Positions 5,434-63,307 of a stretch of 64,000 bases of DNA are shown piece by piece; the first letter of the stretch is position 1; each line of letters begins with the position of its first letter. The notes beneath the pieces are model-generated. The model was given only the letters and a program-made list of their open reading frames with translations, ran no database searches and was not told where the DNA came from. This DNA comes from Macrostomum lignano (lineage: Eukaryota). The stretch spans positions 62,001 to 126,000 of the forward strand of contig NIVC01002693.1 of assembly GCA_002269645.1 (NCBI GenBank), written 5' to 3'. A program made the position numbers and the translations under genes.

Positions 5434-7404
<1,971 letters not shown>

Positions 7405-8300: not shown

Positions 8301-8859
8301 CTGAAAGGCGAATGGGGACTAAAGGTGAAAAGCCGCTGGGCCGTAGCCCCAAACCCACCAGCCAGGCCAAGAGGTAGCGACCGGGGGGTGGCTTAAGCCC
8401 TTACCGGCCCGACCGCTAGCAACCGAGAAACTCCCCGGCTAAGGGCCCGGCTTGGAAAAACCAGAGGCCGAACCAAAGGTCCATCAGCGCGGTACTACAC
8501 TGGGCCCTTTAGGGGGACAAGAGACCGTCCCCGGAACTTGCGGACTGGCCGCATACCCTGTTAAGGTCAGAGGGTGATACCTGTTCCTCAGAGCCGTGGC
8601 CAGAGGTACCTGATACGCACAGGTTCACTTCCAGGCGGGGCCCGTACCCAAATTGGCCAGCAGGCCACAGATGGGTTGCCGCCGCCGGAGCCCAGTCAGT
8701 CCAGCAGCCCTAGAGCTGCCTTGAACACATGCGGGGCGTGAACCCCTGGGAAACAACTAATAATCTTGATCTCAATCATATGATTCCTATTCATGATCCC
8801 CAATCATTTTTCCCAATCATGATTTCCATTCTTGATTCTCGATCCTAATCATCAGCCAT

Positions 8860-9510
8860 GATTTCCTATCCTGATACCCAATCCTGATCCCCAATCCTGA
8901 TCCCCGATCCTGATCCCCATTAAGTGATTGCCAATCCTGATCCCCAATCCTGATCCTCCGTGCTCATCCCCAATCCTGATCGCCAATCCTGATCCCCAAT
9001 CCTGATCCCCAATCCTGATCCCCAATTCTGATCCCCAATCCTGATCCCCAATCCTGATTCCCGATCCTGATCCCCGATCCTGATCCCCAATCCTGATACC
9101 CAATCCTGATCCCCAATCCTGATCCCCAATCCTGATCCCCGATCCTAATCCTTAATCCTGATCCGCAAACCTGATCCCCAATCCTGATCCCTAATCCTGA
9201 TCCCCAATCCTGATCCTCAGTGCTCATCTCCACCTGATCCCCAATCCTGATCTCCAATCCTGATCCCCAATCCTGATCCCCAATCCTGATCCTCAGTGCT
9301 CATCTCCACCTGATCCCCAATCCTGATCCTCAGTGGTCATCCCCATCTGATCCCCAATCCTGATCCCCAATCCTGATCCCCTATCCTGATCCTCAGTGCT
9401 CATCCCCATCTGATCCCCAATCCTGATCCCCAATCCTGATCCCCAATCCTGATCCCCAATCCTGATCCCCAATCCTGATCCCCAATCCTGATCCGCAGTG
9501 CTCATCCCCA
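8860..9510. repeat. 13-bp satellite (AATCCTGATCCCC)n, degenerate back to ~8760
   Basis: Direct reading; 13-aa periodicity (GIRIGDQDWGSGL) equals 3 x 13 nt. Confidence 0.95.
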
Positions 9511-10322
9511 ATCTTGATCAGCAATCCTGAACCCTAAAAATTCTAATTCCCGATTCTGAGCGCAGGGAATATTCATGAAATTTTTGCTTTAGCGAGTCAA
9601 GTACATGAAATACATGTGGGGAACCTTGACTGATATCGTATCTACACGTAACAGACACCCGCATTCCCGACCTGCAGCCCTTTATCGAATGCACCCACCA
9701 AGACAGCTCTCAGGAGCAAGAATGGCAAGCAGTATGTGCAGCATTATTATTTTCAAATTTGCGCTTTAAAACGGTGCAACTGTGCTTTAAAACTGTGCAC
9801 TGCTGTCATTTTAACTGACCATTCAAGCGATGCCTTTGGGGTCCCCCATAGCATTCCGTGTCCGAGCTCGATTCCACCTCTGTGAGGTTGGGGTCTGAGC
9901 TGCCTAGCAACAGCATAGGGGGCCAGAGCTGTCTCTATGCTCAAGACCGTATGAGTGCAGTGGCAGCCCTTTACCTGTCCCAGCATCTGAAAACAGTTCA
10001 GCTCAATTTAATACAGTAGCTTCATCAGGCTGGGTGCACAGAGGCGGGCATGGATGCTGAGCTCGCTATTGTTCTCCATCTGCTTGCAGCCCTCTCTGTC
10101 TGCCTTCTTTTCTGCCTTTCTTCGTTTCGAGCTTTTCTATAAGAGATGCAGAAGGGGCCTCTTGGAGCGCCTCAGCTCACATCGGCCTCAGGCAGACTCG
10201 AGAATTTTCTTCGACTGCATTGGCTTTTTGGAGCAGAGAAGCTACAGAAGCTACAGGCATAACTTTACTGTTTTGCTTCTGAATCCTCACAGCACAGTTC
10301 ACAAAGAGTAACCGGTGAGTGC

Positions 10323-11117
10323 CTGTCTGAGTGTCTGTCTGTCTGTCTGCCTGTCTGTCTGTCTGTCTGTTTTGGTGTCTAACCGCTTGTATGTCTGTCT
10401 GTCTGTCTGTTTTGGTGTCTGACAGCTAGCATGTCTGTCTGTCTGTCTGTCTGTTTTGGTGTCTGACAGCTAGCATGTCTGTCTGTCTGTCTGTCTGTTT
10501 TGGTGTCTGACCGATAGCATGTCTGTCTGTCTGTCTGTCTGTTTCGGTGTCTGACAGCTAGCATGTCTGTCTGTCTGTCTGTCTGTTTTGGTGTCTGACA
10601 GCTAGCATGTCTGTCTGTCTGTCTGTCTGTTTTGGTGTCTGACCGCTAGCATGTCTGTCTGTCTGTCTGTCTGTTTCGGTGTCTGACCGCTAGCATGTCT
10701 GTCTGTCTGTCTGTCTGTCTGAGTGTCTGTTTCGGTGTCTGACCGCTTGCATGTCTGTCTGTCTGTCTGTCTTCCTGTCTGAGTGTCTGTTTCGGTGTCC
10801 GACCGCTTGCATGTCTGTCTGTCTTAGTGTCTGTTTCGGTGTCCGACCGCTTGCATGTCTGTCTGTCTTAGTGTCTGTCTGTCTGTCTTAGTGTCTGTCT
10901 GTCTGTCTTAGTGTCTGTCTGTCTGTCTTAGTGTCTGTCGGTCTTAGTGTCTGTTTGTCTGTCTGTCTTAGTGTCTGTCTGTCTGTCTGTCTGTCTTAGT
11001 GTCTGTCTGTCTGTCTGTTTTGGTGTCTGACCGCTAGCATGTTTGTCTGTCTGTCTCTCTCTGTCTGTCTGTCTTAGTGTCTGTCTGTCTTAGTGTCTGT
11101 CTGTCTGTCTGTCTTAG

Positions 11118-11181
<64 letters not shown>

Positions 11182-11465
11182 GGTCTGTCTGTCTGTCTCA
11201 GTGTCTGTCTGTCTTAGTGTCTGTCTGTCTGTCTGTCTTAGTGACTGTCTGTCTGTCTTAGTGTCTGTCTGTCTTAGTGTCTGTCTGTCTTAGTGTCTGT
11301 CTGTCTGTCTGTCTTAGTGTCTGTTTGTCTGTCTGTCTGTCTGTTTTGGTGTCTGACCGCTTGCATGTTTGTCTGTCTGTCTGTCTGTCTGTCTTAGTGT
11401 CTGTCTGTCTGTCTTAGTGTCTGTCTGTCTTTCTGTCTTAGTGTCTGTCTGTCTGTCTGTCTTAG

Positions 11466-11558
<93 letters not shown>

Positions 11559-11640
11559 TTCTGTCTGTCTGTCTGTCTGTCTGTCTGTGTGTCTGTCTGT
11601 CTGCTGTCGTAGTGTCTGTATGTCTGTCTGTCTGTCTGTT
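10323..11640. repeat. Interrupted (GTCT)n microsatellite in a probable 5'-UTR intron
   Basis: GTCT runs are interspersed with TTTTGGTGTCTGACCGCTAGCAT and TTAGT. A donor CCG|GTGAGT lies at 10315 and an acceptor TTCTCAG ends at 11679. Confidence 0.9.
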
Positions 11641-11773
11641 GTACACCACCGTCATTTTAAGTCCCTCCTCCATTCTCAGACGCATCTCAAACTCAGCGCA
11701 GCACATCAGCTCTGTCAGCACCTCGGCAGCGACTCAGCCGCCCTTGAGCAGCCGAAGGCACTCGAGCAGCTCC

Positions 11774-14700
11774 ATGGCTGAGGTGAGTACTAAGCAGCTG
11801 GCTGTCTATTGTGTTTGCCGTGCTGTTTTTTTTTTACGTAAACTCAGCATTATTGTCATTATTAAATACACGGTTTCTCGTAGTGATCAGGTAATCTGAA
11901 TCCATTTTTAGATCAAATAACTAAGCAGTTTTTTCTTAGGATTTGTACTTATTTGGGTCCACCCTCTGCAATGTTACGAAATATAATTTTTGCATCTTTG
12001 GCTGAGAGTCATGCCGCAGTCTCTGTTTTTGTGTTATGCGCGATGTACTCAACAGCTGCCGCGAAGTTGACAATGACAAGAACTTCAGTGGCGCTTTGAG
12101 ACGTCTCGGAGTCGCAGCATTTCAGACCTGCATGATCCGCAAGGGCGATCACATGACATCATATGTCAACCATTCGGCTGTTGCCTGAGCGACTTGCAAG
12201 AAGTGTTGAGAAGTTCAGCATGTCACACCAGCGTATGAACGCGCTAAGACTGGATGCGTTTAGTCATTGTTGACTCACCTGTGTTCTTGGTAACTTGGTT
12301 ACGAGCTCGTAATATCATTAAGCTGTTTCTCTGTACATTATGCACCCACTACCCCATTGACTGGTAATAAGTATATTTTATTGCGTTTATCCAAAATAAA
12401 TAAATGATTGTCGATATAAAGTACAATTATTGCGTTGCTTATTTATTCAAGCTTTCCTGAAGTCCTGTTCTTGCAACGCGACTTTCCTTCCTGCACTCGA
12501 GCGACAGATATTTAAAAGGTTATGGGACTCTGATGGCATCCAGCATCAAGGATGTCAGGTCAGCATGAAAGCCAATATTTCATCAAGTCGCACTGCTTGC
12601 TGATTTAACATCTCGAAGTGTCTGAGGCTAAGCTGGGTGGCAGAAAGTCTTTGACTTATTATTATTAAGTAGTTATATTATTAGTTATTAATTATTATTA
12701 ATTATTAATTATTAAGTAGAAGCTGTGGAAGCAAAGTACAAGCGCAATAACCAAAGGAATGAGGCACCATTGGCGAGCATCATTCGTTAGCGCCTCATCA
12801 CTAGTTGAGAACAGTTGTTGTTGTTGTTGTTGAGAATAGCAGGGTGAGACCGTCGACGCAGCCGAAGACACCGTGTCAGTTCTGCGATGCGATAGAGTTC
12901 CATGTTAATGACCTGCTTGTCACCTATCTTGCAGGCAGCAACACTGACTTCATTAGCTATCTGAGCAAGTTTGTCAAATTCGAGGTCTTGGCGATTTCAT
13001 CCTTCAAATATTTCTACTTTCTGTTTTGCAATACAGACTCGTACTTATCAGTTAGCTGGCTCCCTTCGTCTACCACGCTTTTCCCACAGACTAGCATAAC
13101 CGTTAATTTGCCACAGACATTTCAGCTACCCTGTTCTCTGTGTTAGTATAAATTCAAGTTCAACTCGCGGCTTCTGCCCTTCACCTCTGCTTCTCTTCTA
13201 CTGATTCCTTCCCCGCTAACCGCTCGTTCAATATTACTCGTAGTTTATTGTCAACTTCCACAAATTGGTAGCAGAGCGTGGTTCCTCTCTCTTCCTCGAC
13301 GAATCTATTCTACAAATTGGTAGCAGAGCGTCCGGATTACCATGGTTATCACGCGATCAACAACTGACCTATCTGGCGACCAGATCAAGCAGTCCAAGAA
13401 CGACCACAGCACAGCCTCTGCTGAAGCGCCAATCGACGCGGAGCAGCCGCACGTCGAAGCCAGTGACCCGCCGCCTGCTGCTTCAGCAGCCGCGACATCT
13501 GCTCTTCCCGCTGCTCCATCCACAACTGCGATCCCTGCAGCAGCTCCCGCTGCCTCCGTCGATATCAACGCCCTCCTGACCGCTATGACCGCCATGATGC
13601 AGCAGAATCAGCTGCTCATACAACAGCTCGCCGCTAATTCCCATCCTGCCCTGAAATCTGAGTCGTCGTCCGCAACCAGCGATAGCGATCCGGCCGCTCT
13701 AATCCACTCCACTGTTCTCCAGAAGGTTCGTCTCCCGACATTCGACGGCACCGACCCAACCGCATTCCCCGGGTTCTGGAACGCCTTCCTCTACCGCGTC
13801 GACCAATCCAGTTTCAACGACGTCGATAAGTTTGAGGCGCTCCGCGGTCTTCACTCTGGCTCGGCACTCCGGAAGCTTGGCGCCCTCGACGCTTGCCAGC
13901 CCAACGCCTACGCCGAAGCCTGCCGCGTCCTCCAGGCCAACTACGCCGATGCCCAGGAGCAGAAAAACGCCTTCTTCCAGATCCTTTTCGCTTTTCACTG
14001 CAGCTCCGCCTCCGACTTGGATGAGCTCGAGAATTACACCGACGCCCTCCGACTCGCTACCGGCCAGCTACTCCGCCTAGGTGAGCTCGCGTGCACCCTC
14101 GACAGCCGCGTCTACGCACTCTGGAACCGCCTCCCGCTCGAGCTCCAGACCGAAATCCGGAACAACCGCGCCGCCAACCTCGTGCCCACAATGGCCCAGC
14201 TCCAGGGCCTCTTTACTGATTACTTGCATGTTGTATCAAATGTACGATGCGAATTCGCTCGGCTCTTCTAGCTCCAATATCATCGATGCCAACATCCTCC
14301 GGTTCGTCATTGATGTCAGGCTGGATCGGCACAACCAGTGGAACTACTCTGTTGATCGCAATGTTATGCAGCACAAAACAGGCGCTTATTATCAAGCAAA
14401 ACTTGCTCGGATGGAATCGGAGACTTGCGGAATGACGATTCAGGCATTAAAATCGAGACTTTAGAATCCCGAATGAACATTCTATTTTCACCCGAGTTTG
14501 TCGCAGCCTCCGGTTGAAGTCGGTCTCTCTTGCATCTCTTTTGGAGTGTCGAAAACCTTCATGAGAAATGGTCTCAGAGGATATCCACTATCACCGACGA
14601 GGAATACTGCCACTAACACTTCTGATAGAATCTCCTTTAATGCAGAGTTGTTGAATATGAAAGAATCGGGTGTACTTCTCGGCCAGCATACTAGAATGTT

Positions 14701-17700
14701 CGTGAATGACATTGAGACACTGCACACAGCTTGAACATTAATAGAATAAAACGATTTTCTGTTCTCAAAAACATACTCATTGTTAGTTGGACTCTTGATA
14801 GCGACATTTGTGCAGTCGATAACACCAATGACATGTGGCAGTTCGGCAATCAAATGGAACCCGGCCATGGTCTGATTGATTTCAACGTGGCTCCTAGGAA
14901 AACTAACAAAGTTGTTCGTAGCGACTGTCAAATAGTCTATGTCCCGATTTCGGCACAGCCGTTGGCAACAAGGGTGATGCCAAGCACCACCTGTCGCGTA
15001 GAGGTTAAAGGACAGCAGGGCGATATCATCGGCTGTCTCTCGCGAATTCTGCTAGTTTCTGCACACACCCCGCCGAAGCAGAGAGTACTCGTAGACGTCG
15101 TTGATAGGAAGTGTAGATAGCGGCACCACCAAGTTGAGCAACGGACAAACAGAAATGGTGCTTTCTCATATATCGCGCTTTACCTACAAAGATCATGTCG
15201 AAAAAAGTCGGAAAGGCTGCCAGGTGATGACACGGCAGCCCATCAACATGATAGCGGAAAACAACTGCTCTGCCACTTTGAAGTCACATAGCACGACACT
15301 CACGACCGAACCGAGCGAAAATGTTTCTGCTCTGCCCTTCCCAATTTACCTATATGTCCTTAAGTTTCACAGCCAATATCATAGGCCTTTAATTACCCTA
15401 TACTAATTATAACCATCTGCCTAATCCGATTTCAGAGAGCTCTGAGTCCCAGCGAGTCCAGCGAATACGAGGCCTCCCAGCATCTCTACAGGCAGATCAA
15501 GCAGGCGGTAGCAGCCGGAGACGAACGGCTGACTGATGATCTGCTGTTCCAGGTGTCCGAGAGCATCGTCGGACCTGGAGAAGACTTCGCCAAAGGCGTC
15601 ATTTTTGCTGCAGCTCGGGACAGAGACGGACTGCCGGTTCTTCGATTACTGGAGATGGGGCACGGGGTCGACATATTTCGGCTGGTTGATAGCGATGGCG
15701 ACTCGGTGACTCACCTGGCAGCAAAGAGTCAGACTGCGGAGACGATGGAGTTCCTGAAACAGAAGCTGCAGGCAGCAGAAGCGGACTGGAACCCATTCGA
15801 AGCAAGAGATAGCAGGCAGAAAACAGTGATGCATAGGGCAGCTGAGAATCTCACAGATCATGGATCGACATTCCAATGGCTGATGTTCGAACTCGAAGCG
15901 GACTGTCTCACTGACAGAGATGCAAACAATAACACAGTCATCCACATTGCGGCTCAGTTCCAGAAGGCGGAATCAATGCAGTTCATCAAAGAGAAGATGA
16001 ATGGAGTCGAGTGTTTCAAGCTGAGAGGATGGAAGAACAAGACTGCAGTGCACTGTGCTGCATGCAATAAAGTGAGCAGCTCAGCACTCGAGTGGCTGGT
16101 GAACGAGCTCGGACCAGACTGTCTTCTTGACAGAGATGCAAACAATGACACAGTCATCCACATTGCGGCTGAGTTCCAGAAGGCGGAATCAATGCAGTTC
16201 ATCAAACAGAAGATGAATGGAGTCGAGTGTTTCAAGCTGAGAGGATGGAAGAACAAGACTGCAGTGCACTGGGCTGCTTGCAATGCTGTGAGCAGCTCAG
16301 CACTCGAGTGGCTGGTGAACGAGCTCGGACCAGACTGTCTCACTGCCGGAGATGCAAGCAATGACACAGTCATCCACATTGCGGCTCAGTTCCAGAAGGC
16401 GGAATCAATGCAGTTCATCAAACAGAAGATGAATGGAGTCGAGCGTTTCAAGCTGAGAGGAAGGCGAAACATGACTGCAGTGCACTGTGCTGCATGCAAT
16501 AAAGTGAGCAGCTCAGCACTCGAGTGGCTGGTGAACGAGCTCGGACCAGACTGTCTCACTGACAGATATGCAAACAATGACACAGTCATCCACATTGCGG
16601 CTGAGTTCCAGAAGGCGGAATCAATGCAGTTCATCAAACAGAAGATGAATGGAGTCGAGTGTTTCAAGCTGAGAGGAAGGCAAAACATGACTGCAGTGCA
16701 CTGTGCTGCTTGCAATAAAGTGAGCAGCTCAGCACTCGAGTGGCTGGTGAACGAGCTCGGACCAGACTGTCTCACTGACAGAGATGCAAACAATAGCACA
16801 GTCATTCACATTGCGGCTGAGTTCCAGAAGGCGGAATCAATGCAGTTCATCAAACAGAAGATGAATGGAGTCGAGTGTTTCAAGATGAGTGGATTTCAAA
16901 ACAGAACTGCAGTGCACTGTGCAGCTTTCAATACTGTGAGCAGCTCAGCACTCGAGTGGCTGGTGAACGAGCTCGGACCAGACTGTCTTCTTGACAGAGA
17001 TGCAAACAATAACACAGTCATCCACATTGCGGCTGAGTTCCAGAAGGCGGAATCAATGCAGTTCATCAAACAGAAGATGAATGGAGTCGAGTGTTTCAAG
17101 CTGAGAGGAAGGCAAAACATGACTGCAGTGCACTGTGCTGCTTGCAATAAAGTGAGCAGCTCAGCACTCGAGTGGCTGGTGAACGAGCTCGGACGAGGTT
17201 GTCTCATGGACAGAGATGCAGACAATGACACAGTCATCCACATTGCGGCTCAGTTCCAGAAGGCGGAATCAATGCAGTTCATCAAACAGAAGATGAATGG
17301 AGTCGAGTGTTTCAAGCTGAGAGGAAGGCAAAACAAGACTGCAGTGCACTGTGCTGCTTTCAATGCTGTGAGCAGCTCAGCACTCGAGTGGCTGGTGAAC
17401 GAGCTCGGACCAGACTGTCTTCTTGACAGAGATGCAAACAATGACACAGTCATCCACATTGCGGCTGAGTTCCAGAAGGCGGAATCAATGCAGTTCATCA
17501 AACAGAAGATGAATGGAGTCGAGCGTTTCAAGCTGAGAGGAAGGCGAAACATGACTGCAGTGCACTGTGCTGCATGCAATAAAGTGAGCAGCTCAGCACT
17601 CGAGTGGCTGGTGAACGAGCTCGGACCAGACTGTCTTCTTGACAGAGATGCAAACAATGACACAGTCATCCACATTGCGGCTGAGTTCCAGAAGGCGGAA

Positions 17701-19245
17701 TCAATGCAGTTCATCAAACAGAAGATGAATGGAGTCGAGCATTTCAAGCTGAGAGGAAGGCGAAACATGACTGCAGTGCACTGTGCTGCATGCAATAAAG
17801 TGAGCAGCTCAGCACTCGAGTGGCTGGTGAACGAGCTCGGACCAGACTGTCTCACTGACAGATATGCAAACAATGACACAGTCATCCACATTGCGGCTGA
17901 GTTCCAGAAGGCGGAATCAATGCAGTTCATCAAACAGAAGATGAATGGAGTCGAGTGTTTCAAGCTGAGAGGAAGGCAAAACATGACTGCAGTGCACTGT
18001 GCTGCTTGCAATAAAGTGAGCAGCTCAGCACTCGAGTGGCTGGTGAACGAGCTCGGACCAGACTGTCTCACTGACAGAGATGCAAACAATAGCACAGTCA
18101 TTCACATTGCGGCTGAGTTCCAGAAGGCGGAATCAATGCAGTTCATCAAACAGAAGATGAATGGAGTCGAGTGTTTCAAGATGAGTGGATTTCAAAACAG
18201 AACTGCAGTGCACTGTGCAGCTTTCAATACTGTGAGCAGCTCAGCACTCGAGTGGCTGGTGAACGAGCTCGGACCAGACTGTCTTCTTGACAGAGATGCA
18301 AACAATAACACAGTCATCCACATTGCGGCTGAGTTCCAGAAGGCGGAATCAATGCAGTTCATCAAACAGAAGATGAATGGAGTCGAGTGTTTCAAGCTGA
18401 GAGGAAGGCAAAACATGACTGCAGTGCACTGTGCTGCTTGCAATAAAGTGAGCAGCTCAGCACTCGAGTGGCTGGTGAACGAGCTCGGACGAGGTTGTCT
18501 CATGGACAGAGATGCAGACAATGACACAGTCATCCACATTGCGGCTCAGTTCCAGAAGGCGGAATCAATGCAGTTCATCAAAGAGAAGATGAATGGAGTC
18601 GAGTGTTTCAAGCTGAGAGGATGGAAGAACAAGACTGCAGTGCACTGGGCTGCTTTCAATGCTGTGAGCAGCTCAGCACTCGAGTGGCTGGTGAACGAGC
18701 TCGGACCAGACTGTCTCACTGACAGAGATGCAAGCAATGACACAGTCATCCACATTGCGGCTCAGTTCCAGAAGGCGGAATCAATGCAGTTCATCAAACA
18801 GAAGATGAATGGAGTCGAGTGTTTCAAGCTGAGAGGAAGGCAAAACATGACTGCAGTGCACTGTGCTGCTTGCAATAAAGTGAGCAGCTCAGCACTCGAG
18901 TGGCTGGTGAACGAGCTCGGACCAGACTGTCTCACTGACAGAGATGCAAACAATAGCACAGTCATCCACATTGCGGCTGAGTTCCAGAAGGCGGAATCAA
19001 TGCAGTTCATCAAACAGAAGATGAATGGAGTCGAGTGTTTCAAGATGAGTGGATTTCAAAACAGAACTGCAGTGCACTGTGCTGCTTGCAATGAAGTGAG
19101 CAGCTCAGCACTCGAGTGGCTGGTGAACGAGCTCGGACCAGACTGTCTCACTGATACTGATAGTTCACGTCGGTCTGCTTTATCAATCTGCGAACAACAT
19201 CAGAGCAGGCAAATTTTCGATCGACTGTCAAGATTAGTTCGCTAA
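11774..19245 (+). CDS. Ankyrin-repeat solenoid protein, copy A; join(11774..11782,15436..19245), ~1272 aa, 15 x 72-aa units
   Basis: ATGGCTGAG|GTGAGT is a phase-0 donor and CTAATCCGATTTCAG|AGA a phase-0 acceptor, in frame with ORF 15553-19245. TVIHIAA and TAVHCAA ankyrin helices are present. The period is 216 bp (15913 to 19153 = 15 x 216). The splice model is inferred. Confidence 0.85.
13266..13283 (+). promoter_or_regulatory. LTR-retrotransposon primer-binding site (tRNA-iMet-type), partly duplicated at 13318-13331
   Basis: TGGTAGCAGAGCGTGGTT lies 3 nt after a ...TTCCACA putative LTR end and precedes the gag ATG at 13342. It resembles the complement of initiator tRNA-Met 3' ends. Confidence 0.65.
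13342..14271 (+). mobile_element. BEL/Pao gag relic (DUF1759-like), open 309-aa frame, C-terminally truncated, intronic
   Basis: MVITRS start; [47 protein letters not shown]. No zinc knuckles or pol follow. Confidence 0.8.
14225..15210 (-). pseudogene. PIF/Harbinger transposase (HARBI1 / DDE_Tnp_4-like) relic, intronic
   Basis: [53 protein letters not shown] and [12 protein letters not shown], with stops and frameshifts. Confidence 0.85.
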
Positions 19246-20897
19246 AATCTGCTTTTTGCGCACTTACAACTGTTTTTATGTTAATAGTGCATATTTTAGG
19301 CTATTGGCAAGGCAACGCGCGTTTTTTTGTTGGTGGTGTTTTTTAATTCCATGGTTACGCTCACATACCGAAGAATATGCACGGATTGGTCTATTTACTT
19401 TTCCCGTAATTAGCCCACTTTTTCGACGGATGATGATAACTTATAAGCAGTCCCAATAGATTCGTTGACATTCTTGGATTCAACAATGAGGTACAAGTAA
19501 GATAACTTCAACAGGTATTATCCGGTTGAACCGCCAAGCAAATTCAGCTGGTATAATTTATTGCTGAGCATGGCTTCTCATCAATAGAGGTAGCTCGTAG
19601 AAAGCGAACGTCAGCAAGGTCTGTGCGAGTGCTGGCTGACGTTTCTGTGTATTTCTGTGGTTGACACTGCAAAATGCTGCTATATAGGACTTTTAAATGC
19701 GGAAGTTTTCATTGGCACTGGGAGTCCTATTTGGTTTTTCACCAGAATTTACTACTAAGTAATGGTTGCAGAGTAGATATACTAGTAAGTGCGGTAGAAT
19801 TCCATTAGTTTCTCTTATACTGATTCAATATGCACGCATATGAGTATTCCTCACCTTTTGCCTTTGATTTGACTGTTTATTATCTTACAAATTTTTGAAG
19901 ACTTATTTGATAATATCTCAGACCCTCTTGTAGTGTGAAGTAGCACCGAAGCCATGAAGTTTTTATAAAGACTTTGTTTCGTTAGACCTCCCAATATTTT
20001 ATCTGTTTCATAAATGATCGCAGTAATAACTTTTGGTGACACAGATTAATTTAATCCATTTTGTGCGTCGCTAATGCTAAGTTGTTTATTTTTCGTTGAC
20101 TGATTGCTGTCTGTTCGTAAAACTCATGCTCTTATTTACAGTGGCTTCTGACACTGGGTGTCTGACACTGAGTGCGCGCAACTCACTACTAACATGACCC
20201 ACCTAGGCATGTCAATTAAGACGCGTTTAGACTGCCATGAAAAGTGAAAAGTGCCACCAAACCATGCGACTTATGCACGGACAGAGAAACAAGAAAATAT
20301 TTAAAAGACGTGGAATCTGCACTCAAAAGCGATGTTAATCTAGTGGCAGTGTGAACGAATCTTTTGACTAAAATATTAAACCTCCGTTTGTTTTACCCAG
20401 GCTTACGCATGCTTATTCAGATTTTTGTGACTATTTATTAATCACTTTTATGCCCACATTTGTTTTACTCTGTGTAGCGAACTCTTATTTGCACGCCTTG
20501 ATGGTGCCACGATCCCGAATTCTCATCGCACCCCAGCCAATCGCGGCTGCACTCGTGTGATGACGTCACTGGTTGCTTAAGCAGCGGAGTTCAAGGTCTG
20601 TTCAGCAGTCACGTGATGCATGCTCTTGGATAAGCTTCCCCACCCTCCAATCCCAATTTTTGCTTTCCCGCCTTTCGAGGCGTCAATGGGAATCTGCAAT
20701 GCAGCTTCATCGCTACCATGCACTTGCACTTGCCCTCTCCGACCATTCCCATGAGGCTGACCTCCCCGTTTTCTTTTACTGGCCAAAATTGTCGCCAGCT
20801 TCTGCTGGGCCAGCGGCACCGACTGCTCCGTGAACTGCGACCGACCGGACCCGCTGCTGCCAGCGACCTCCCGACCTCCCTTAGTGTCAGCGACTGC

Positions 20898-21237
20898 CTG
20901 TTTTTGCTCTTGTAGACTGGTATGCTCAGATGTGAGCTGGTTTGCTGATCCATTTTTATTTCCTGATCGATTTTACCTACAATGATTTAAAGTACATATC
21001 GTACATAACTGTCTGTTTTTGCTCTTGTAGACTGGTATGCTCAGATGTGAGCTGGTTTGCTGATCCATTTTTATTTCCTGATCGATTTTTACCTACAATG
21101 AATTAAAGTACATATCGTACATAACTGTCTGTTTTTGCTCTTGTAGACTGGTATGCTCAGATGTGAGCTGGTTTGCTGATCCATTTTTATTTCCTGATCG
21201 ATTTTTACCTACAATGAATTAAAGTACATATCGTACA
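20898..21237. repeat. Three tandem copies of a ~115-bp unit (single copy in paralog at ~61497-61603)
   Basis: TGTAGACTGGTATGCTCAGATG starts at 20911, 21026 and 21142. Confidence 0.95.
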
Positions 21238-31039: not shown

Positions 31040-31230
31040 AAACCCAAAAACCCCAAAAATACCCGGTGGCCAATCCCGACCCGAACCCCCGAACCCGGTA
31101 CCCGTACCCCAAATCCCGAAACCCGAACCCGGTACCCGTACCCCAAATCCCGAAACCCGAACCCGGTACCCCTATCCAAAATCCCGAACCCCGAACCCAG
31201 GAACCAAAAGCCGACCCGAACCCCGAACAC
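31040..31230. repeat. CCCGAA/CCCGTA short-repeat cluster
   Basis: ACCCGAACCCCGAACCCGGTACCCGTACCCC repeats, a pattern often seen in DNA-transposon subtermini. Confidence 0.6.
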
Positions 31231-32291
31231 CCACCCCTTATGCAGAACTTCTCCTCAGAATGTGTGTCGGTAAAGCAAAGTTGGCGGGCAGCGGCGGCGT
31301 TCTCAATACCGGCGAAGAATTGTGACGCAGTTTTTCCTGCGCTTCTCTGCCGGCCAGGTTCAGCGCCAGGCGCCTCTTGCGCCCCCGCCAGTGTCCGAAC
31401 GGCTGCTGTGATTGACCGGACGGCGTTGTCAACTGCAGCCTGTATCCGCTCGTACGAAAGATGCGCAAAGGATTCTTTGGCTGCGGGCCGTCAGTTTCTC
31501 CGAGAACGCTCGAGAGACAGGTAGAGAGAGGGGGAGAGTGATAGAGAGAGGGAGAGAGAGAGAGGTAGAGAGGAGGAGAGAGAAGTAGATAGGTAGACAG
31601 ATGTAGAGAGAGATCGCAAAAAGGATGGCACTTTAGTTGAACTCAAAGGTTTTGTGCAGGCTATTTTCTGTGTGTCGTTTAAACAGTTTTTTCTGCAAGC
31701 CACGCAGCAGTTTCAATGCACAGCAGCGCGTGCGGATATTGTAAGTTTTAGCATAGATGATTGCTACATTGTGCTTGGGTTCGTGATGACGCGTGAAGTC
31801 ACAGCCAAATGTGACCGCCGCCTCCAACATCCGAGCGCCGGTAGATACTCACAGTTTTGATATTCAAAGTGAGCATGAAAGTTTCTGCACTAAAATCGGC
31901 TCCATCGTGCAACCCAGTGAGCAACAATTCATACTTTATGCGTACATTCGCATGTACACGAAATACCAACGGTGTGACTGCACGACTCACCCGTATCATC
32001 CAAATCGTTGGATCGGCATTCGGACACATTACTGTTCGACCCTGCATGGCATTTACAGTTCCGGCAAGCTCAGGTTGTAACAAAGTCAACCAACTTTTTA
32101 AAATCACATTCGAAACTTCCGAAAATGCAGCCATCAGTGTTGTTTCACAGCTTGCTGCTACACCTTTTGCGCACAATTGGTTGCCTTGAGCACGATTCAA
32201 TCACATTTTTCTGAGCAGCTAAGCGAATTTATCATTGGAAAGTGGTTGGTCCACATCCACAGGACTCGGACTCGGCCGGTGCACTGCGGCA
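31231..32291. repeat. Segment A copy 2, directly joined to a 120-bp block matching 5211-5326
   Basis: Matches 343-1287, then AATTGGTTGC..GCACTGCGGCA. It includes a truncated DIRS-like gag frame (31231-31490, minus). Confidence 0.93.
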
Positions 32292-34492: not shown

Positions 34493-37400
34493 ACTACTAA
34501 GGACTGGCAGATGTGTTGATTTTGGGAGGGGGGTGGGTGTCAACCCTCCTCGCCTCTCATTGGCTGGCGCCCCGATCACTAGGTGATCGATACCCGTATC
34601 GATATCGGCGCTCGGCGCGCGCGCCGCAGGCGCGTGGCGCCAAGCGCCGTCCAGCCGCAGGCGCACCCTCCCGATATTAGATCCCAATAAATCAATCAGA
34701 TCCCAAATCAATCAGATCCCAAATCAATCAGATCCCAAATCAATCAGATCCCAAATCAATCAGATCCCAAGCGCACCCTCCTGAGCCGCAGACGCCCATG
34801 CCGCAGGCGCCCCGAGTGTACACTCTCCCGAGCCAAAGGTACACTCTCCCCAGTACACTCTCCCCAGTACACTCTCCCGATATGTACACTCTCCCACTCT
34901 CCCGATATGGGTGTACACTCGCCCAATACAGGTGTACACTCTCCCGATATGTAGTCAACGATACGTACCCCGCAGGCACCCTATACCTCACGCCCTGCCC
35001 CCACCTAGCCTCTTCCCCTCTCTCACCCACATCTCAACTAGCGAAATCGAACCCAGGTCGCGCCCATACTAGGCCACTACACGGTTTGGGGGTATAGGGA
35101 GCGAGAAGTTTTAACCCTGATGCTGACGCAGCCCTGTACAGTGAGCGTGTACGGGCAGAGAGGGGTGGGGCGGACAGAGAACTAGCCACTAGGTTGTTAT
35201 ACTGTTGAAGCATAGGGAGCGAGAAGTTTTAACCCCGATGCTGACGCAGCCCTGTACAGTGAGCGTGTACGGGCAGAGGGTGGGTGGAAAGAGATGTGAA
35301 TAACACAGCCTGCTGCAGGAGCCGGATAGAGAGGCGCATGCTAGGACAGAGAGACAGTGTGAGTCACACACACACCCACAGAGAGAGCCGTACAGAGGAT
35401 AGAGAGCTCCCTCCCCAGTTGCAGGGGACAGAGAGGCAGGCAGGGTATGCAGGGGCATGCGAACAGTCAAGGGGCCACGCGAGGATAGAATGGAGGAGCA
35501 GAGATGTGTATGGACAGAGAGCAGGCCACGCGTGCGTAGTGTGAGGGAACAGAAACATATGGAGCAGGAGGGAGATAGGAAGCAAACGCGCAGGGTAAGG
35601 GAGCCACACAGGGCGGTACAGTGAGACACGGGCAGGGGTGGAGCCGTGCGTGGACAGAGCTGAACGGCATGGTCAGCTGCAGGAATAGGATGATAGAGAG
35701 GCGCGGATAGGAGGGACAGAGAGCAGTGTGCAGGGGTAGGCAGCCACGCTGGCAGGGAACAGAGGCGCGTGTAGCCAGTTGCAGCCCGGGACAGAGAAGT
35801 GTGAAGGGGGCCTGGGACAGAGTTCCGAGCAAGGCACAGAGAGGTAGGGTCCGGTAGCCATGTATAGACAGGGACCCACGCGAGGGCAGGACAGGGGAGT
35901 AGACATGCAAGTTGCATGCAAGGCCAGAGAGGTGTGCGCGGAGGGAGACAGAGAGCAGTGTGTAGGGGTAGGTAACAGCAAACTTTAGTAGAGGTGCGTG
36001 CGGGGACGGAGAAACCAGTCTGAGCGTACAGAGACGTTACAGAGAGGTACACAAACAGAGAACAAAGCGAGCAGAGCACATGTGTAGGCGCAGAGACGTG
36101 AGGGAGAATCGACCAAAACACGCTATGTATTATCAAAAGTTGGTTTTAGTGCAGCATATTTAATAGTGGGTAGTATAATAGTATGTACATAGTAGGTATA
36201 ATGGTAGTAATAATAGTAAGTATATTAGCCCAAAAGGTAGGCTAAAACAGGCTAAACTGTGTGTACGCATCCTCATCACCCCACAAGCCCCCTCTCCCGC
36301 CAGATTCACTCTTCCAAACCCTCCTGTATTGCTGTATGAAGGAAAATATAGTGTAAAAATACAGATGTTAACCGTCAGACCGCTGAAATCAGGGCACACT
36401 AGAGGGGGTTTCGGGGTCTGCATGCTCTATGTAAGCTGCTTGAGGAGGTTCCAAGGGCGTTGTGAGGGTTTCCATTATGTTTTGAAAAAACTAGGGGCTT
36501 AAATACAACGTTTTATTCAAAAAGTAGGTTATTTTAATGAAATAGCTGACACAATCATTGTCGAGAGTAGAAATTTTTATAAGAAACCAGGCATTTTAGC
36601 AAAAATAAACCTTCAAACCACATAAAATTGAATAAAAAGCAGACATTTTCAATTATAAACCGCAAGTATTTTAATAGAAAAGTAAGCAAACAAGGCACAA
36701 AAGCAGCAAATTTTACCTTTTTTATTTTAATGTTACTGTTAAGGTAGAGAGTAGAAACTTGTGAGCTGTACGGAGTTAGAAAGTATTAACCATTATGTAT
36801 CGTATGAATTATTAGTTCAGTACCAGCCATTGGTCAAGCGAGCATTTATGAAGTTATTACGAGTGATGAAGGGATAGAGAGCTATATACAGGAAGACAGT
36901 ATCCTTCTAAACCACCACGAACAGATTGCTAATACAGATAAGCTTTGTCTGTGTGCAGTATGAGTAAGCGAAGGCGGGGCAAATACTTTTCCACATGCCG
37001 GACAGAACAGTATTGTGCTAGGATTTCTCTCGAAATCGCGGTACGTTACTAGTTTTTATCACACCATCCAGATGCGTCAACTAGTCAGCAGTAGTCATTT
37101 ATATGTTATTAGAACTTACAAACCCAGGTCAGGTAAATATTACAAAGAGTATATTACGTACACACGCCAACTCCGAATACCAAGCCATACTAGTCTACTT
37201 GCAGTGCTCCTGGAGGGAAGGGACGGTCAAGAGTTACACACCAAGAATGCATTCACACAAAGAGTACACCACTCGAGCCCCGTCCATGCGCCCCGATATG
37301 TATGACGCAGGCAACCCTCCCGACATGTATGCCGCAGGCGACCCTCCCGACATGTACCCAACATGTATGTCGCAGGCGACCCTACTGACATGTACCCCGA

Positions 37401-38886
37401 CATGTACACCCTACCAAATGGCACTCGAGCCACAGGTGCCAAGCGGCCCCCCGAAATGTACGCCGCGGGCGCCCCCCTCCCGAGCCGAAGGTACACTCTT
37501 CCAATATGAGTGTACACTCTCCCAATACAAGTGTACACTCTCCCGATATGAGTGTACATCGATTTGTAGTCAACAATACCTATTAACACAAAATTAGGCT
37601 AGTGAAAACTACTTATAGTAGGTGAAATTGCGTATATTTACGTAAAAAGTAAGCAAAACACATATTAATCACATCAGTAGGTGTAAATATCAGGGCATAA
37701 TACATATTACGAAACATATAGGTGTACGGACATATAGAATTAAGCATATGGACAGCAAAAACACACAATGTAGGTGCATTTATCGATATTTTGGCAGAAA
37801 AGTAGGTGAAATAGACAAAATAGTAGGTATAATTCACAGAACCTACTCATTAGTGTAGTAGGCGCTTGTAGATGCTAGTATATTGTAAAACATAGGTTGA
37901 AATACACATACGCACAGTAGATACAAGTATAATGCAGGTGCATATGCACACACTGTAGATTCGAATTATGTAGATGCATAGGCTAAAATACACACATCGT
38001 AGAGACAGAAGCAGGCATAATGCAGGAAAATTATGATACATATTAGTGCGTAAAGTATCATATTATGACACGCTGTAGCACATATTGACATAATGCAGGG
38101 GAAAATATTGACAGAAATAGTACACAATTGTAGAGGTAACAACCCGCCAACTAGTAAGGGCATCCAGCACTTGTTCAGGTTTTTATTATTTCGAGACGAG
38201 TGTCATGCCCCCGCAAGAGATCTTATCAGAAATTTGTTGAACTCCACTGCAACTCTCCCCAGAGCCTCCAAATGCGAGTTTTTAACCCAGGGTCGAGTAC
38301 AAAGGACCCGCCCACTCTTAACCCCAAGGGGTGATCCTAGCGGAGACCAAGTACAGTGCGGACGGAGAGGGATAACAGAAAGCGCTGCACTGCACCAGAC
38401 CGTGGGGCTGCATTCCTCCCCCGAGGTAGGCGCGTCAGCTCCCACTCCTCATTTAACCATCAAGTAAACTAAAGAAGTCAAGCAGAAAGCCTTACTATCA
38501 CCTGCAGCCAGCACAAGTAAGAGTACTTTCCACTAGAGAGCTATAGTGCAAGATTCGCGAGCCAAGTTGAAGCACACCAAATTACACTAAAGACATATGT
38601 ATTAAAAAGCATACCGGCACCTCTACAAAAACACAGTATGTACCGATTAAAGTTGCTTTTGGTGCAGTGTATTTAATAAAAAGCAGGTACCTAACACAAA
38701 AGTAGGCATCAATGCAGTGCACGGACTAAACTGTATTTACAAACGCAGGGCAACGAACTACACACAATGTAGCGCATAGACATAATTGTACGCATAAATG
38801 TACGCAATTTCCGGTATATAGGACCACATGTACGCAAATGTACACAATGTACACAAACAAACACACACACACACACACACACACAC
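34493..38886 (+). repeat. Left inverted arm (~4.39 kb)
   Basis: Reverse complement of ~46645-51038; I noticed only a few differences. It ends in (CA)n. Confidence 0.95.
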
Positions 38887-38891
38887 AATCA

Positions 38892-41800
38892 CGCACCGGG
38901 CACTTGTTGGTACGGTATACAATGGTGGGCACTTATTTTGCAATTTTTTTTGACACACGAAAACACACACATACACACAGTGCAATGACCTATTAAGTAT
39001 TTTTAGCATTTAAATGATGAAAAAAAGCATACATTGAAATAAAAAAGCACGTCCCATACTAATAGTATGATCTATTGAAAGTGAAGGAATAGCATATCAT
39101 CGTGTAACTATATTGTCCTCAGTCCAGCGAATTCAGCATTACTTGAAATACAAAAGGCTTCGTTAAAGCCAATCCACATGAAGGAAAAACTAGTTACAAG
39201 CAGTCTATTTACCTTTACCTTTACTAATACGCTATAATGCTGTACGCAATATGCCTGACTAATATGAATAAAAAATTCAATTACACTTGCGCTTAGAAAA
39301 AAACCTAAAATTGACAGTGAAACTGAAAAACTGAAACGCAGAGATTAGTTAAGCAGATTAAACAACAAATTCCGGTCGAGTGAGAAAACAGGAGTCTCGT
39401 TATTTAGAGCACTCTGGCATCCAGCATTACGCTCGTAGACTATTAGCTGCTCTCCTGAGTTCGAAGCTGACAGGTCAGTTGCAGTCGGCATCGATTGAGT
39501 CGACTGCCAATTTAGTCAATGGGTTTCGTTTCTTCTTTTCACTGGAACCTGTGGTGGGATTAGCAAAAGATCGATTTCGCATATCGATTTAGTGATTTCA
39601 AGGACGACAAAATCATTCTTCTCTGCATGTCAGCTCCAGAAGATGCTAGTTTGCTTGCAGCTTTCTGTAGGAGCATTCTACTTTAGTAAAGTATACCCAT
39701 TCTAAAATAAGCTGTTTTTAATATGTCCCAACAAGTCTCTGTGCAGTGTGTCATCCGTTTGCCCATCAATTTGTTCTGGAGCCCTTTATTAATTGAGTTC
39801 TTTAGGTGACTTAACAAATGCGGAAAAAACTAGACACACACACAGTGGCCCAACACTTCGTGTCCCAATAATTGCTAGGAAAAATGCACTGCAGTGTTTA
39901 AGCATCTCTTCTGAGGGGCCCTTGCATGCATAGCTATAGAATCTGCTAAGACCCGATCTGAGAGTTAAAAGTACAAAAAGTTATAACGCTTCTAGACACG
40001 AAAACGAATGCAGCCACAGCATGAACTAACCTTTCATTGAAGCTTCTGCTTAAGACTTTGATGCTGTGAAGCATTCTGGCATCTAGCATTACTCTCGTAG
40101 ACTATTAGCTGCTCTCCTGAGTTCGAAGCTGACAGGTCAGTTGCAGTCGGCATCGATTGAGTCGACTGCCAATTTAGTCAATGGGTTTCGTTTCTTCTTT
40201 TCATGGAACCTGTGGTGGGATTAGCAAAAGATCGATTTCGCATATCGATTTAGTGATTTCAAGGACGACAAAATCATTCTTCTCTGCATGTCAGCTCCAG
40301 AAGATGCTAGTTTGCTTGCAGCTTTCTGTAGGAGCATTCTACTTTAGTAAAGTGTACCCATTCTAAAATAAGCTGTTTTTAATATGTCCCAACAAGTCTC
40401 TGTGCAGTGTGTCATCCGTTTGCCCATCAATTTGTTCTGGAGCCCTTTATTAATTGAGTTCTTTAGGTGACTTAACAAATGCGGAAAAAACTAGACACAC
40501 ACACAGTGGCCCAACACTTCGTGTCCCAATAATTGCTAGGAAAAATGCACTGCAGTGTTTAAGCATCTCTCTGAGGGGCCCTTGCATGCATAGCTATAGA
40601 ATCTGCTAAGACCCGATCTGAGAGTTAAAAGTACAAAAAGTTATAACGCTTCTAGACACGAAAACGAATGCAGCCACAGCATGAACTAACCTTTCATTGA
40701 AGCTTCTGCTTAAGACTTTGATGCTGTGAAGCATTCTGGCATCTAGCATTACTCTCGTAGTCTATTAGCTGCTCTCCTGAGTTCGAAGCTGACAGGTCAG
40801 TTGCAGTCGGCATCGATTGAGTCGACTGCCAATTTAGTCAATGGGTTTCGTTTCTTCTTTTCACTGGAACCTGTGGTGGGATTAGCAAAAGATCGATTTC
40901 GCATATCGATTTAGTGATTTCAAGGACGACAAAATCATTCTTCTCTGCATGTCAGCTCCAGAAGATGCTAGTTTGCTTGCAGCTTTCTGTAGGAGCATTC
41001 TACTTTAGTAAAGTGTACCCATTCTAAAATAAGCTGTTTTTAATATGTCCCAACAAGTCTCTGTGCAGTGTGTCATCCGTTTGCCCATCAATTTGTTCTG
41101 GAGCCCTTTATTAATTGAGTTCTTTAGGTGACTTAACAAATGCGGAAAAAACTAGACACACACACAGTGGCCCAACACTTCGTGTCCCAATAATTGCTAG
41201 GAAAAATGCACTGCAGTGTTTAAGCATCTCTCTGAGGGGCCCTTGCATGCATAGCTATAGAATCTGCTAAGACCCGATCTGAGAGTTAAAAGTACAAAAA
41301 GTTATAACGCTTCTAGACACGAAAACGAATGCAGCCACAGCATGAACTAACCTTTCATTGAAGCTTCTGCTTAAGACTTTGATGCTGTGAAGCATTCTGG
41401 CATCTAGCATTACTCTCGTAGTCTATTAGCTGCTCTCCTGAGTTCGAAGCTGACAGGTCAGTTGCAGTCGGCATCGATTGAGTCGACTGCCAATTTAGTC
41501 AATGGGTTTCGTTTCTTCTTTTCACTGGAACCTGTGGTGGGATTAGCAAAAGATCGATTTCGCATATCTGTTTAGTGATTTCAAGGACGACAAAATCATT
41601 CTTCTCTGCATGTCAGCTCCAGAAGATGCTAGTTTGCTTGCAGCTTTCTGTAGGAGCATTCTACTTTAGTAAAGTGTACCCATTCTAAAATAAGCTGTTT
41701 TTAATATGTCCCAACAAGTCTCTGTGCAGTGTGTCATCCGTTTGCCCATCAATTTGTTCTGGAGCCCTTTATTAATTGAGTTCTTTAGGTGACTTAACAA

Positions 41801-46603: not shown

Positions 46604-46650
<47 letters not shown>
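46465..46650. other. (CA)n - GC-rich hairpin - (TG)n fold-back core
   Basis: TCAGGCGTAT (46515) / ATACGCCTGA (46605) is a perfect 10-bp inverted repeat. Inner stems are TCCTGC/GCAGGA and GCGCCGATCGCC-GCA-GGCGATGGCGC. Confidence 0.85.
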
Positions 46651-46672
<22 letters not shown>

Positions 46673-49600: not shown

Positions 49601-51038
49601 TCTCTGGCCTTGCATGCAACTTGCATGTCTACTCCCCTGTCCTGCCCTCGCGTGGGTCCCTGTCTATACATGGCTACCGGACCCTACCTCTCTGTGCCTT
49701 GCTCGGAACTCTGTCCCAGGCCCCCTTCACACTTCTCTGTCCCGGGCTGCAACTGGCTACACGCGCCTCTGTTCCCTGCCAGCGTGGCTGCCTACCCCTG
49801 CACACTGATCTCTGTCCCTCCTATCCGCGCCTCTCTATCATCCTATTCCTGCAGCTGACCATGCCGTTCAGCTCTGTCCACGCACGGCTCCACCCCTGCC
49901 CGTGTCTCACTGTACCGCCCTGTGTGGCTCCCTTACCCTGCGCGTTTGCTTCCTATCTCCCTCCTGCTCCATATGTTTCTGTTCCCTCACACTACGCACG
50001 CGTGGCCTGCTCTCTGTCCATACACATCTCTGCTCCTCCATTCTATCCTCGCGTGGCCCCTTGACTGTTCGCATGCCCCTGCATACCCTGCCTGCCTCTC
50101 TGTCCCCTGCAACTGGGGAGGGAGCTCTCTATCCTCTGTACGGCTCTCTCTGTGGGTGTGTGTGTGACTCACACTGTCTCTCTGTCCTAGCATGCGCCTC
50201 TCTATCCGGCTCCTGCAGCAGGCTGTGTTATTCACATCTCTTTCCACCCACCCTCTGCCCGTACACGCTCACTGTACAGGGCTGCGTCAGCATCGGGGTT
50301 AAAACTTCTCGCTCCCTATGCTTCAACAGTATAACAACCTAGTGGCTGGTTCTCTGTCCGCCCCACCCCTCTCTGCCCGTACACGCTCACTGTACAGGGC
50401 TGCGTCAGCATCAGGGTTAAAACTTCTCGCTCCCTATACCCCCAAACCGTGTAGTGGCCTAGTATGGGCGCGACCTGGGTTCGATTTCGCTAGTTGAGAT
50501 GTGGGTGAGAGAGGGGAAGAGGCTAGGTGGGGGCAGGGCGTGAGGTATAGGGTGCCTGCGGGGTACGTATCGTTGACTACATATCGGGAGAGTGTACACC
50601 TGTATTGGGCGAGTGTACACCCATATCGGGAGAGTGGGAGAGTGTACATATCGGGAGAGTGTACTGGGGAGAGTGTACTGGGGAGAGTGTACCTTTGGCT
50701 CGGGAGAGTGTACACTCGGGGCGCCTGCGGCATGGGCGTCTGCGGCTCAGGAGGGTGCGCTTGGGATCTGATTGATTTGGGATCTGATTGATTTGGGATC
50801 TGATTGATTTGGGATCTGATTGATTTGGGATCTGATTGATTTATTGGGATCTAATATCGGGAGGGTGCGCCTGCGGCTGGACGGCGCTTGGCGCCACGCG
50901 CCTGCGGCGCGCGCGCCGAGCGCCGATATCGATACGGGTATCGATCACCTAGTGATCGGGGCGCCAGCCAATGAGAGGCGAGGAGGGTTGACACCCACCC
51001 CCCTCCCAAAATCAACACATCTGCCAGTCCATAGTAGT
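46645..51038 (-). repeat. Right inverted arm (~4.39 kb)
   Basis: Reverse complement of 34493-38886. Confidence 0.95.
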
Positions 51039-52493: not shown

Positions 52494-52530
<37 letters not shown>

Positions 52531-52709: not shown

Positions 52710-52888
<179 letters not shown>

Positions 52889-52979: not shown

Positions 52980-53064
<85 letters not shown>

Positions 53065-63303: not shown

Positions 63304-63307
63304 CTAT

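Follow-up and report, generated by a model that had tools for sequence, protein, structure and literature searches.

Fungal NOD-like receptors (NLRs) can carry ankyrin (ANK), tetratricopeptide (TPR), or WD repeats that are over 85% identical to each other; such repeats are polymorphic in number, and the ANK repeats have positively selected sites on their concave surface (Dyrka et al. 2014, PMC4986451). Dyrka and colleagues found that 0.8% of the ANK, TPR, and WD repeat regions of metazoans are this conserved, and left these uncharacterised (PMC4986451). Here we describe an array of this kind in a gene of the flatworm Macrostomum lignano. The gene lies in a 64,000-nucleotide stretch of contig NIVC01002693.1 (positions 62,001 to 126,000 of the forward strand, assembly GCA_002269645.1; hereafter the window, in which all of our positions are counted). 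It contains 15 tandem units (array A), each encoding a pair of ANK repeats, and a paralogue with 11 units and a 1-nt deletion (copy B) lies 41 kb downstream. Across both arrays, non-synonymous changes are in statistical excess at the positions that are randomised in libraries of designed ANK proteins. We propose that the gene probably encodes a cytosolic ANK-repeat binder, which would be encoded in the germline and belong to a lineage-specific family, and whose units would evolve in concert while diversity is retained or driven at the residues of the groove.

Array A resembles the arrays of the fungal NLRs (Podospora nwd/het-e/het-d and the ANK locus Pa_3_8560; PMC4986451, PMC1805685) in that its tandem repeats are over 85% identical and change in number and order by inter-repeat exchange, with the length variation in our case seen between paralogues, not alleles. 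The fungal repeats were delimited by over 85% identity across at least 100 amino acids (aa); the 20 distinct units among our 26 have a mean pairwise protein identity of 88% (over 1080 aa) and a nucleotide identity of 93%, while the units of P0001, the closest diverged relative, are 44% identical. The fungal NLRs differ in other respects. By Pfam, the array A gene and the neighbouring ORFs (open reading frames) lack a NACHT or NB-ARC domain, and the gene lacks an N-terminal effector; the array belongs to an animal; its repeating unit joins two 36-residue ANK repeats that are not identical; and relatives of the gene carry a C-terminal kinase or caspase, which is not a NOD architecture. Array A behaves like the fungal NLR arrays yet, as it has no NOD domain, falls outside that family. 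Near-identical arrays with diversifying binding residues are a recognised route to rapidly evolving specificities that has so far been documented mainly in fungal NLRs, and we now see this signature in an animal, where family members join the same type of array to a caspase or a kinase.

Two other described systems are relevant. In the engineered library ANK-N5C, positions 2, 3, 5, 10, 13, and 33 of the repeat were randomised (PMC4308713), and in platyhelminths, "ANK caspases" have been described, with hypervariable repeats left unmentioned (PMC11463336). In the literature on Macrostomum and ankyrin, and on concerted evolution or diversifying selection of ANK repeats, we found no description of this family's arrays.

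A spliced gene for a long ankyrin solenoid

Tandem Repeats Finder (TRF) identified a 216-bp tandem array at 15901-19154 (15.1 copies, 93% matches). In the reading frame, this corresponds to 15 in-frame units on the + strand at 15898-19137, each of exactly 216 bp or 72 aa and comprising two 36-residue ANK repeats, all within a single ORF; 12 of the 15 unit sequences are distinct. An initial annotation, made from the sequence alone, had counted 26 units at 15913-19153. There are indeed 26 units, but 15 are found there and the other 11 form the second array, at 57359-59733.

The initial annotation also needs correction in that, to judge by splice signals and homologous models, the long ORF is not stand-alone but is part of a spliced gene, whose ATG is in an exon 3.65 kb upstream. 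This 5' exon (11678-11782, + strand; its start is approximate) was placed by tblastn and by direct reading, and it ends with ATG GCT GAG at 11774-11782, followed by a GTGAGT donor at 11783. The intron (11783-15435, +; 3.65 kb, GTGAGT...TTTCAG, read directly) ends with the acceptor TTTCAG at 15430-15435. The last exon, 15436-19245, contains the array. As judged by translation and by alignment to P0001, the start of this exon (15436-15897, +) encodes the N-terminal region, a capping ANK repeat, and one diverged double-ANK unit of 70 aa. After the array there is a partial repeat or C-terminal cap with the stop codon (19138-19245, +), so that the ORF stops 36 aa past the last unit. The predicted product has 1272 aa and about 33-34 ANK repeats.

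Public gene models agree with this structure. The M. lignano models P0180 and P0176 begin with MAE/RALSPSE... (the slash marks the splice junction), which supports the 5' exon of copy A, and several public models start with either MAE/RALSPSE... or MAE/RPQSPSE.... Twelve public M. lignano models, in three clusters at 90% identity, have the N-terminus of copies A and B in common, and models P0174-P0183 are near-identical to the stretch at 15436-15897. The ATG, the GTGAGT donor, and the TTTCAG acceptor are kept in both copies and are used by the public models.

We also considered a start codon donated by the spliced leader at the acceptor (15435/15436), because the long exon has no in-frame ATG before the first ANK repeat and because the M. 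lignano spliced leader ends in ATG. We rejected this candidate, as the public models show MAE/RALSPSE... and the exon with ATG-GCT-GAG/GTGAGT is present at 11774-11783, with a counterpart at 53250-53259 in copy B. There is no obvious canonical AATAAA within about 450 bp downstream of the stop codon of copy A. Each gene copy has an upstream non-coding exon (about 10146-10308 in copy A and about 52116-52280 in copy B), and between the two 5' exons of each copy lies a (CTGT)n microsatellite of 0.8-1.3 kb (10323-11639 in A and 52293-53115 in B). On the reverse strand of the array (15954-19043, -) there are ORFs of up to 283 aa, which are a by-product of the stop-free repeated frame and are no evidence for an antisense gene.

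The product has the fold that its sequence suggests. In the protein of copy A, Pfam identifies Ank_2 (E = 4e-84, 17 stretches), with Ank, Ank_3, Ank_4, and Ank_5 all over the curated cut-off as well, and no credible non-ANK domain above that cut-off. As the initial annotation had stated, we found neither a signal peptide nor a transmembrane segment in this product: the Kyte-Doolittle maximum (19-residue window) is just 1.1, and the N-terminus is hydrophilic. AlphaFold2 on a single sequence gave an unusable model (pLDDT, the predicted per-residue confidence, of 43), and we instead used a 17-row alignment and modelled four units, which gave a pLDDT of 97 and a predicted TM-score (pTM) of 0.91. 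In the model, each 72-aa unit forms two pairs of helices (columns 14-21 paired with 24-34, and 50-55 paired with 62-71), and the top Foldseek matches are Espin-AR, ankyrin-B (AnkB), NOMPC, and designed ankyrin repeat proteins (DARPins), all with a probability of 1.0. Pfam, the model, and Foldseek all confirm an ankyrin solenoid. The long solenoids among the best structural matches (ankyrin-R/B/G with 24 repeats, NOMPC with 29, and Espin) share this fold and architecture, but their own repeats are old and individually diverged, do not show concerted evolution, and are 14-20% identical in sequence to our protein.

The units vary at the predicted binding surface

In an alignment of all 26 units, a check that the initial annotation had proposed, 48 of the 216 nucleotide sites vary, and the variation is concentrated at the canonical binding positions of ANK repeats. 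The initial annotation had described scaffold codons that are identical even at their third positions, and we found not a single nucleotide difference among the 26 units in codons 24-31 (AESMQFIK) or in codons 59-72. Codon 47 (AAC) is constant amid the hypervariable codons 45, 46, and 48. The degenerate motifs proposed for the variable parts, D-A-[NSDK]-N-[NDS]-TVIHIAA-[EQKM] and G-[WRFVI]-[KRQNL]-N-[KMRI]-TAVH-[CW]-AA-[CF]-N-[KATDE], match our column table exactly, and the codon pairs given as examples (TGG AAG, AGG CGA, TTT CAA, GTG AAC, and ATT CTA) are all present in it.

To place the units in the register of the ANK repeat, we aligned them to ankyrin-1/2, which makes D8 and T13 positions 1 and 6 of repeat 1 and makes G44 and T49 positions 1 and 6 of repeat 2. 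Variable residues were placed via secondary structure and this alignment to the ANK consensus, not via solvent exposure on the model coordinates. As the a-priori set, we took the 12 codons at the designed-library positions 2, 3, 5, 13, 14, and 33 of both repeats, which account for 17.6% of the non-synonymous sites. The DARPin positions in this set are reportedly those of Binz et al. 2003. We then counted the minimal number of changes in each column with minimal spanning trees, independently of a tree of the units.

Across the whole unit, there are 11.5 synonymous and 47.5 non-synonymous minimal changes (omega, the ratio of non-synonymous to synonymous rates, is ~1.05). The 12 a-priori codons have 24 of the 47.5 non-synonymous changes (binomial p = 3e-7), and the enrichment is seen in each array alone (p = 1.4e-4 in A and p = 1.9e-8 in B). 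At these codons, omega is 3.0 (p = 0.0016 against the synonymous rate), versus 0.63 elsewhere. Pairwise comparisons by the method of Nei and Gojobori gave similar results: the proportion of synonymous sites that differ (pS) is 0.059, and the proportion of non-synonymous sites that differ (pN) is 0.216 at the a-priori codons and 0.034 elsewhere, which yields an omega of 3.7 at the a-priori codons. In array B alone, omega at the a-priori sites is 6.5. Counting methods thus give statistical support for a non-synonymous excess at the predicted binding-surface positions. This bears out two claims of the initial annotation: that variation falls on those beta-turn and helix-1 positions that are varied in the DARPin and ANK-N5C libraries, which the alignment and the secondary structure of the model also indicate, and that the changes at those sites are mostly non-synonymous.

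The a-priori positions do not all vary alike. Variation is strongest at positions 3, 5, and 13 in repeat 1 and at 2, 3, 5, and 13 in repeat 2. Neither repeat varies at position 14 (F21 and N57), repeat 1 does not vary at position 2, and position 33 varies little. Outside of the library positions, column 58 (position 15, after helix 1 of repeat 2) and column 5 vary too. Among the units of diverged relatives, columns 9, 24, 37, 38, 41, 47, 59, and 69 carry about 3 bits each, and all of these are invariant in our arrays. Since columns that are free in the relatives do not vary here, the variation does not merely affect every free site, which speaks against mere relaxation of constraint, as does the constancy of codon 47 beside its hypervariable neighbours.

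DARPins and ANK-N5C (PMC4308713) are the closest engineered counterparts. Like array A, they keep a framework that is constant and self-compatible, place the diversity in the beta-turn and helix 1 (positions 2, 3, 5, and 13, plus 10, 14, or 33), and have diverged capping repeats at both ends; also, DARPins are among the Foldseek matches. Unlike them, array A is natural and germline-encoded, alternates two types of 36-residue repeats, and has about 33 repeats instead of 4-7. Its variable sites use restricted sets of residues, with position 14 invariant and column 58 variable in addition.

Relatives with kinase or caspase domains

The best relatives of the gene are all M. lignano proteins, in which the homologous 72-aa module is 39-53% identical. 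A hidden Markov model of the unit finds 9 full-length units in each of P0001 and P0002 and 7-9 in P0003-P0005. The conserved signature of the module (C3, L4, H16, A18, A19, Q22, M27, C39, F40, T49, H52, A54, A55, N57, W66, L67, and G72) is present in our units. P0001 is an ANK-only protein encoded by a single-exon gene. Five proteins with the module end in a protein kinase (P0003, P0004, P0005, P0023, and P0033), and in P0019, the array is followed by a C-terminal caspase (Peptidase_C14) whose AHG and QACRG motifs are intact. In contrast, the array A gene, like P0001, ends after the ANK array, and we found no kinase exon in the window (tblastn with the kinase domain of P0003) and no Pkinase or caspase by Pfam. 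The initial annotation had reported no effector domain; this holds for the array A gene, but not for family members that share its module.

Near-identical units recur in these relatives. The mean identity between units is 84% in the ANK-kinase P0023 (A0A1I8IVB5) and 83% in the ANK-caspase P0019 (A0A1I8F2E4), and the same columns are hypervariable. A third copy of the gene, copy C (P0164; UniParc UPI0007A303B3), has at least 8 units and is interrupted by the reverse transcriptase of a long interspersed nuclear element (LINE). In copy C, there are 1.83 extra amino-acid states per a-priori column versus 0.34 elsewhere; in P0019 and P0023, there are 1.33 versus 0.22-0.27. The extra states are thus 5-6x denser at the a-priori columns in all three, although part of the variants in P0019 and P0023 are gene-model artefacts. 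When copies A, B, and C are pooled, the 28 distinct units show 26 different 8-residue combinations. From these sequence comparisons, this is a lineage-specific M. lignano family, and high internal conservation is not unique to the array A locus.

Some distant ANK proteins of other invertebrates also have similar double-ANK units, with mean pairwise identities of 63-99% (75-100% for the best pairs): P0029 (Potamilus streckersoni), P0042 (Neocloeon triangulifer), P0115 (Ephemera danica), P0138 (Penaeus indicus), and P0156 (Lasioglossum baleicum). These proteins imply that near-identical ANK arrays are scattered across animals, uncharacterised.

Recombination among units

The units have been amplified and shuffled. 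Units A04-A06 (16546-17193, +) and A10-A12 (17842-18489) are identical throughout; they form a higher-order repeat with a shift of 1296 bp that we identified from the distance matrix and from shift identities. The units that follow these blocks, A07 and A13, differ at 5 sites, and A13 is a mosaic whose first half resembles A07 and whose second half resembles A01/A02. All four gametes are present for 130 of 378 informative site pairs, and the minimum number of recombination events (Rm) is at least 11 within 216 bp. The internal units are homogenised, whereas the first (N-terminal) unit and the cap at the C-terminus have diverged, as unequal exchange would produce. Unit types are mostly specific to either array A or array B, and the arrays differ in length, with 15 units in A, 11 in B, and at least 8 in C. 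The description in the initial annotation of a "recombining, diversifying" protein is thus supported statistically, both by the counts of changes and by the recurrence of the pattern in paralogous arrays.

In one rival explanation, reads from several paralogous or homeologous arrays of a polyploid, repeat-rich genome were merged during assembly, in which case the order of the units, the identical blocks, and the frameshift in copy B would be unreal. Assemblies typically go wrong at perfectly identical blocks, such as those of 648 bp here, and at 1-nt deletions of the homopolymer type, long-read sequencing could have created the 4.4-kb inverted repeat nearby (99.9% identical) as an artefact, and one paper describes M. 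lignano as a hidden polyploid (PMC10468722). However, public M. lignano protein models from another assembly independently corroborate the unit variants, as they share the N-terminus and their unit types are the same or similar (B01 matches exactly), and misassembly would reshuffle units and would not yield site-specific clustering of non-synonymous changes. We consider an artefact of this kind to be quite improbable.

Lamprey variable lymphocyte receptors (VLRs) are built of leucine-rich repeats, are secreted or membrane-bound, and are somatically assembled from cassettes. By analogy, the array could be a substrate for somatic diversification, through VLR-like assembly or another programmed rearrangement, as there is a repeat scaffold with modules that bear variable binding residues and there are many donor-like copies in the genome. 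But array A is of ANK type and is a complete germline ORF without a signal peptide; the gene is already in frame and capped at both ends, and we found neither an incomplete acceptor locus nor flanking cassettes in the window. We give this explanation hardly any credence.

Turnover and integrity of the gene copies

Copies A and B lie within a duplicated segment of ~12 kb (8762-21010 versus 51039-61609) whose non-coding flanks diverge by 3.4-3.9%. Copy B, also on the + strand, has the end of its start-codon exon (ATG GCT GAG) at 53250-53258, a donor at 53259, and an acceptor at 56891-56896 with the same signal as copy A. Its N-terminal non-repeat coding part (56897-57358) differs from that of A at 15 nt, 13 of which are non-synonymous. 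Array B (57359-59733; TRF, 57362-59750 with 11.1 copies) has its own higher-order repeat, as B03-B05 are the same as B07-B09 (864-bp shift). In unit B09, at ~59148 (placed within ~59147-59149), one nucleotide is missing (GAGTTTCAG -> GAGTT-CAG), which splits the reading frame; the C-terminal tail and stop codon (59734-59841) are in frame after the deletion. The M. lignano protein P0183 (UniRef A0A1I8GUW5) is identical to copy B across 223 aa. When we polarised the differences between A and B with P0001 as the outgroup, 8/10 sites matched neither copy. Taken together, the state of the copies looks like fast birth-and-death evolution, and copy A is the sole demonstrably intact member among the copies that we examined.

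A family in this state raises the possibility that array A is a young coding minisatellite in a mostly decaying birth-and-death family, grown by slippage or unequal exchange, and has no selected function. The clustering of changes would then come from constraint on the scaffold or from past selection in an ancestor, with surface sites now drifting. Several observations fit this explanation and weigh against the binder that we propose. Omega for the whole unit is near 1, and the changes are even over the three codon positions (17, 19, and 18). In the non-repeat parts, copies A and B differ by 17 non-synonymous and 2 synonymous changes (13/2 in the N-terminal part and 4/0 in the C-terminal part), and as pN there (~0.036-0.049) is like the divergence of the flanks, purifying selection is not visible. 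Two of the three assessable copies are disrupted (B is frameshifted and C is cut by a LINE), the locus sits amid satellites and transposable-element debris, and our searches yielded no expression evidence. Also, the synonymous baseline comprises only 11.5 changes, the counts derive from per-column minimal spanning trees and from pairwise Nei-Gojobori comparisons rather than from a codon model that allows for recombination, and the public models behind the splicing may be predictions, not transcripts.

Four results are hard to reconcile with a drifting minisatellite. First, an omega of 3.0-3.7 at the a-priori sites, or 6.5 in array B, is beyond what drift at free sites can give. Second, our arrays show no variation at many of the sites that vary freely in diverged relatives. 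Third, indels and stop codons are in deficit relative to the flanks: the coding sequence has 1 indel for ~73 substitution events and the flanks have 15 for 160, and none of the 54 minimal changes gives a stop codon (the chance of this under random change is 0.09). Finally, the site pattern recurs in three more arrays with different C-terminal domains. We take the minisatellite explanation seriously, as the main rival to ours, but think it unlikely.

A candidate recognition protein

We favour a cytosolic, rapidly diversifying binder that is related to the sensor-like pro-domains of the ANK-kinases and ANK-caspases, with which it shares a homologous 72-aa module and, in P0019 and P0023, near-identical units that vary at the same columns. 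The module would have been amplified recently in this subfamily. Unequal crossing-over and gene conversion among the 216-bp units would keep them near-identical by concerted evolution, while diversity would be kept or driven at the groove-lining residues, namely positions 2, 3, and 5 in the beta-turn, position 13 at the end of helix 1, and the adjacent loop residue. Each array would string its own series of "paratope" modules along a scaffold that stays constant, with unit number and order changing fast between paralogues. The selected property may be the recognition of a variable or fast-evolving ligand, and the effector-less protein of array A could act as a stand-alone binder, an adaptor, or a decoy beside relatives that have ANK arrays before a kinase or caspase. 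A role in immunity or allorecognition, which the initial annotation had raised, is suggested by analogy and is much less certain.

More broadly, Macrostomum might have a NOD-less, germline-diversifying repertoire of intracellular receptors, in which double-ANK arrays serve as sensors, either in cis with a kinase or caspase or in trans as binders or decoys, under a regime like that of fungal NLRs. This would be animal non-self recognition (of pathogens, selfish elements, or conspecifics) with an architecture that was not previously described. We offer this extended proposal tentatively and doubt that it will hold.

M. lignano is a laboratory model that is amenable to RNA interference and transgenesis. 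The DED/FADD extrinsic death pathway was lost in flatworms (PMC11463336), so if the arrays are ligand sensors, they would offer a concrete and testable way to study what triggers cell-death or kinase signalling in these animals. They would also be nature's equivalent of the DARPin libraries. If not, the locus is still a clean case of concerted evolution within a coding minisatellite.

Surroundings of the genes

The window is eukaryotic and very satellite-rich. The introns of both copies contain transposable-element debris that we identified with Pfam: a DUF1759 gag-like fragment at 13342-14271 (+) and a Harbinger DDE_Tnp_4 fragment at 14488-14931 (-) in copy A, with counterparts at 54900-55808 and 55900-56448 in copy B. 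In our first homologue searches, the gag-like fragment was 63% identical to its M. lignano match. In the model P0164, the gag fragment and a downstream LINE reverse transcriptase are fused with ANK coding sequence, apparently through mis-annotation. At 6062-7182 (-), there are overlapping frameshifted ORFs with 60% GC; by eye, they have LINE reverse transcriptase and RNase H-like motifs, and Pfam has no hit at E < 0.01. We found nothing with Pfam in the remaining long ORFs of the window, nor with Rfam and tRNA scans of the window.

The 4.4-kb inverted repeat mentioned above (34493-38887 and 46643-51038, 99.9% identical) has a 7.7-kb spacer with a 661-bp tandem array at 39408-45274 (copies ~99% identical), and it may be a genuine palindrome, a foldback element, or a long-read assembly artefact. 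There are also segmental repeats: 1-1673 corresponds to 62016-63689 (98.4%), and 337-1285 corresponds to both 31225-32171 and 62352-63301. These repeats show that the window belongs to a larger block of tandem duplications, and more copies of the ANK gene may sit just outside of it.

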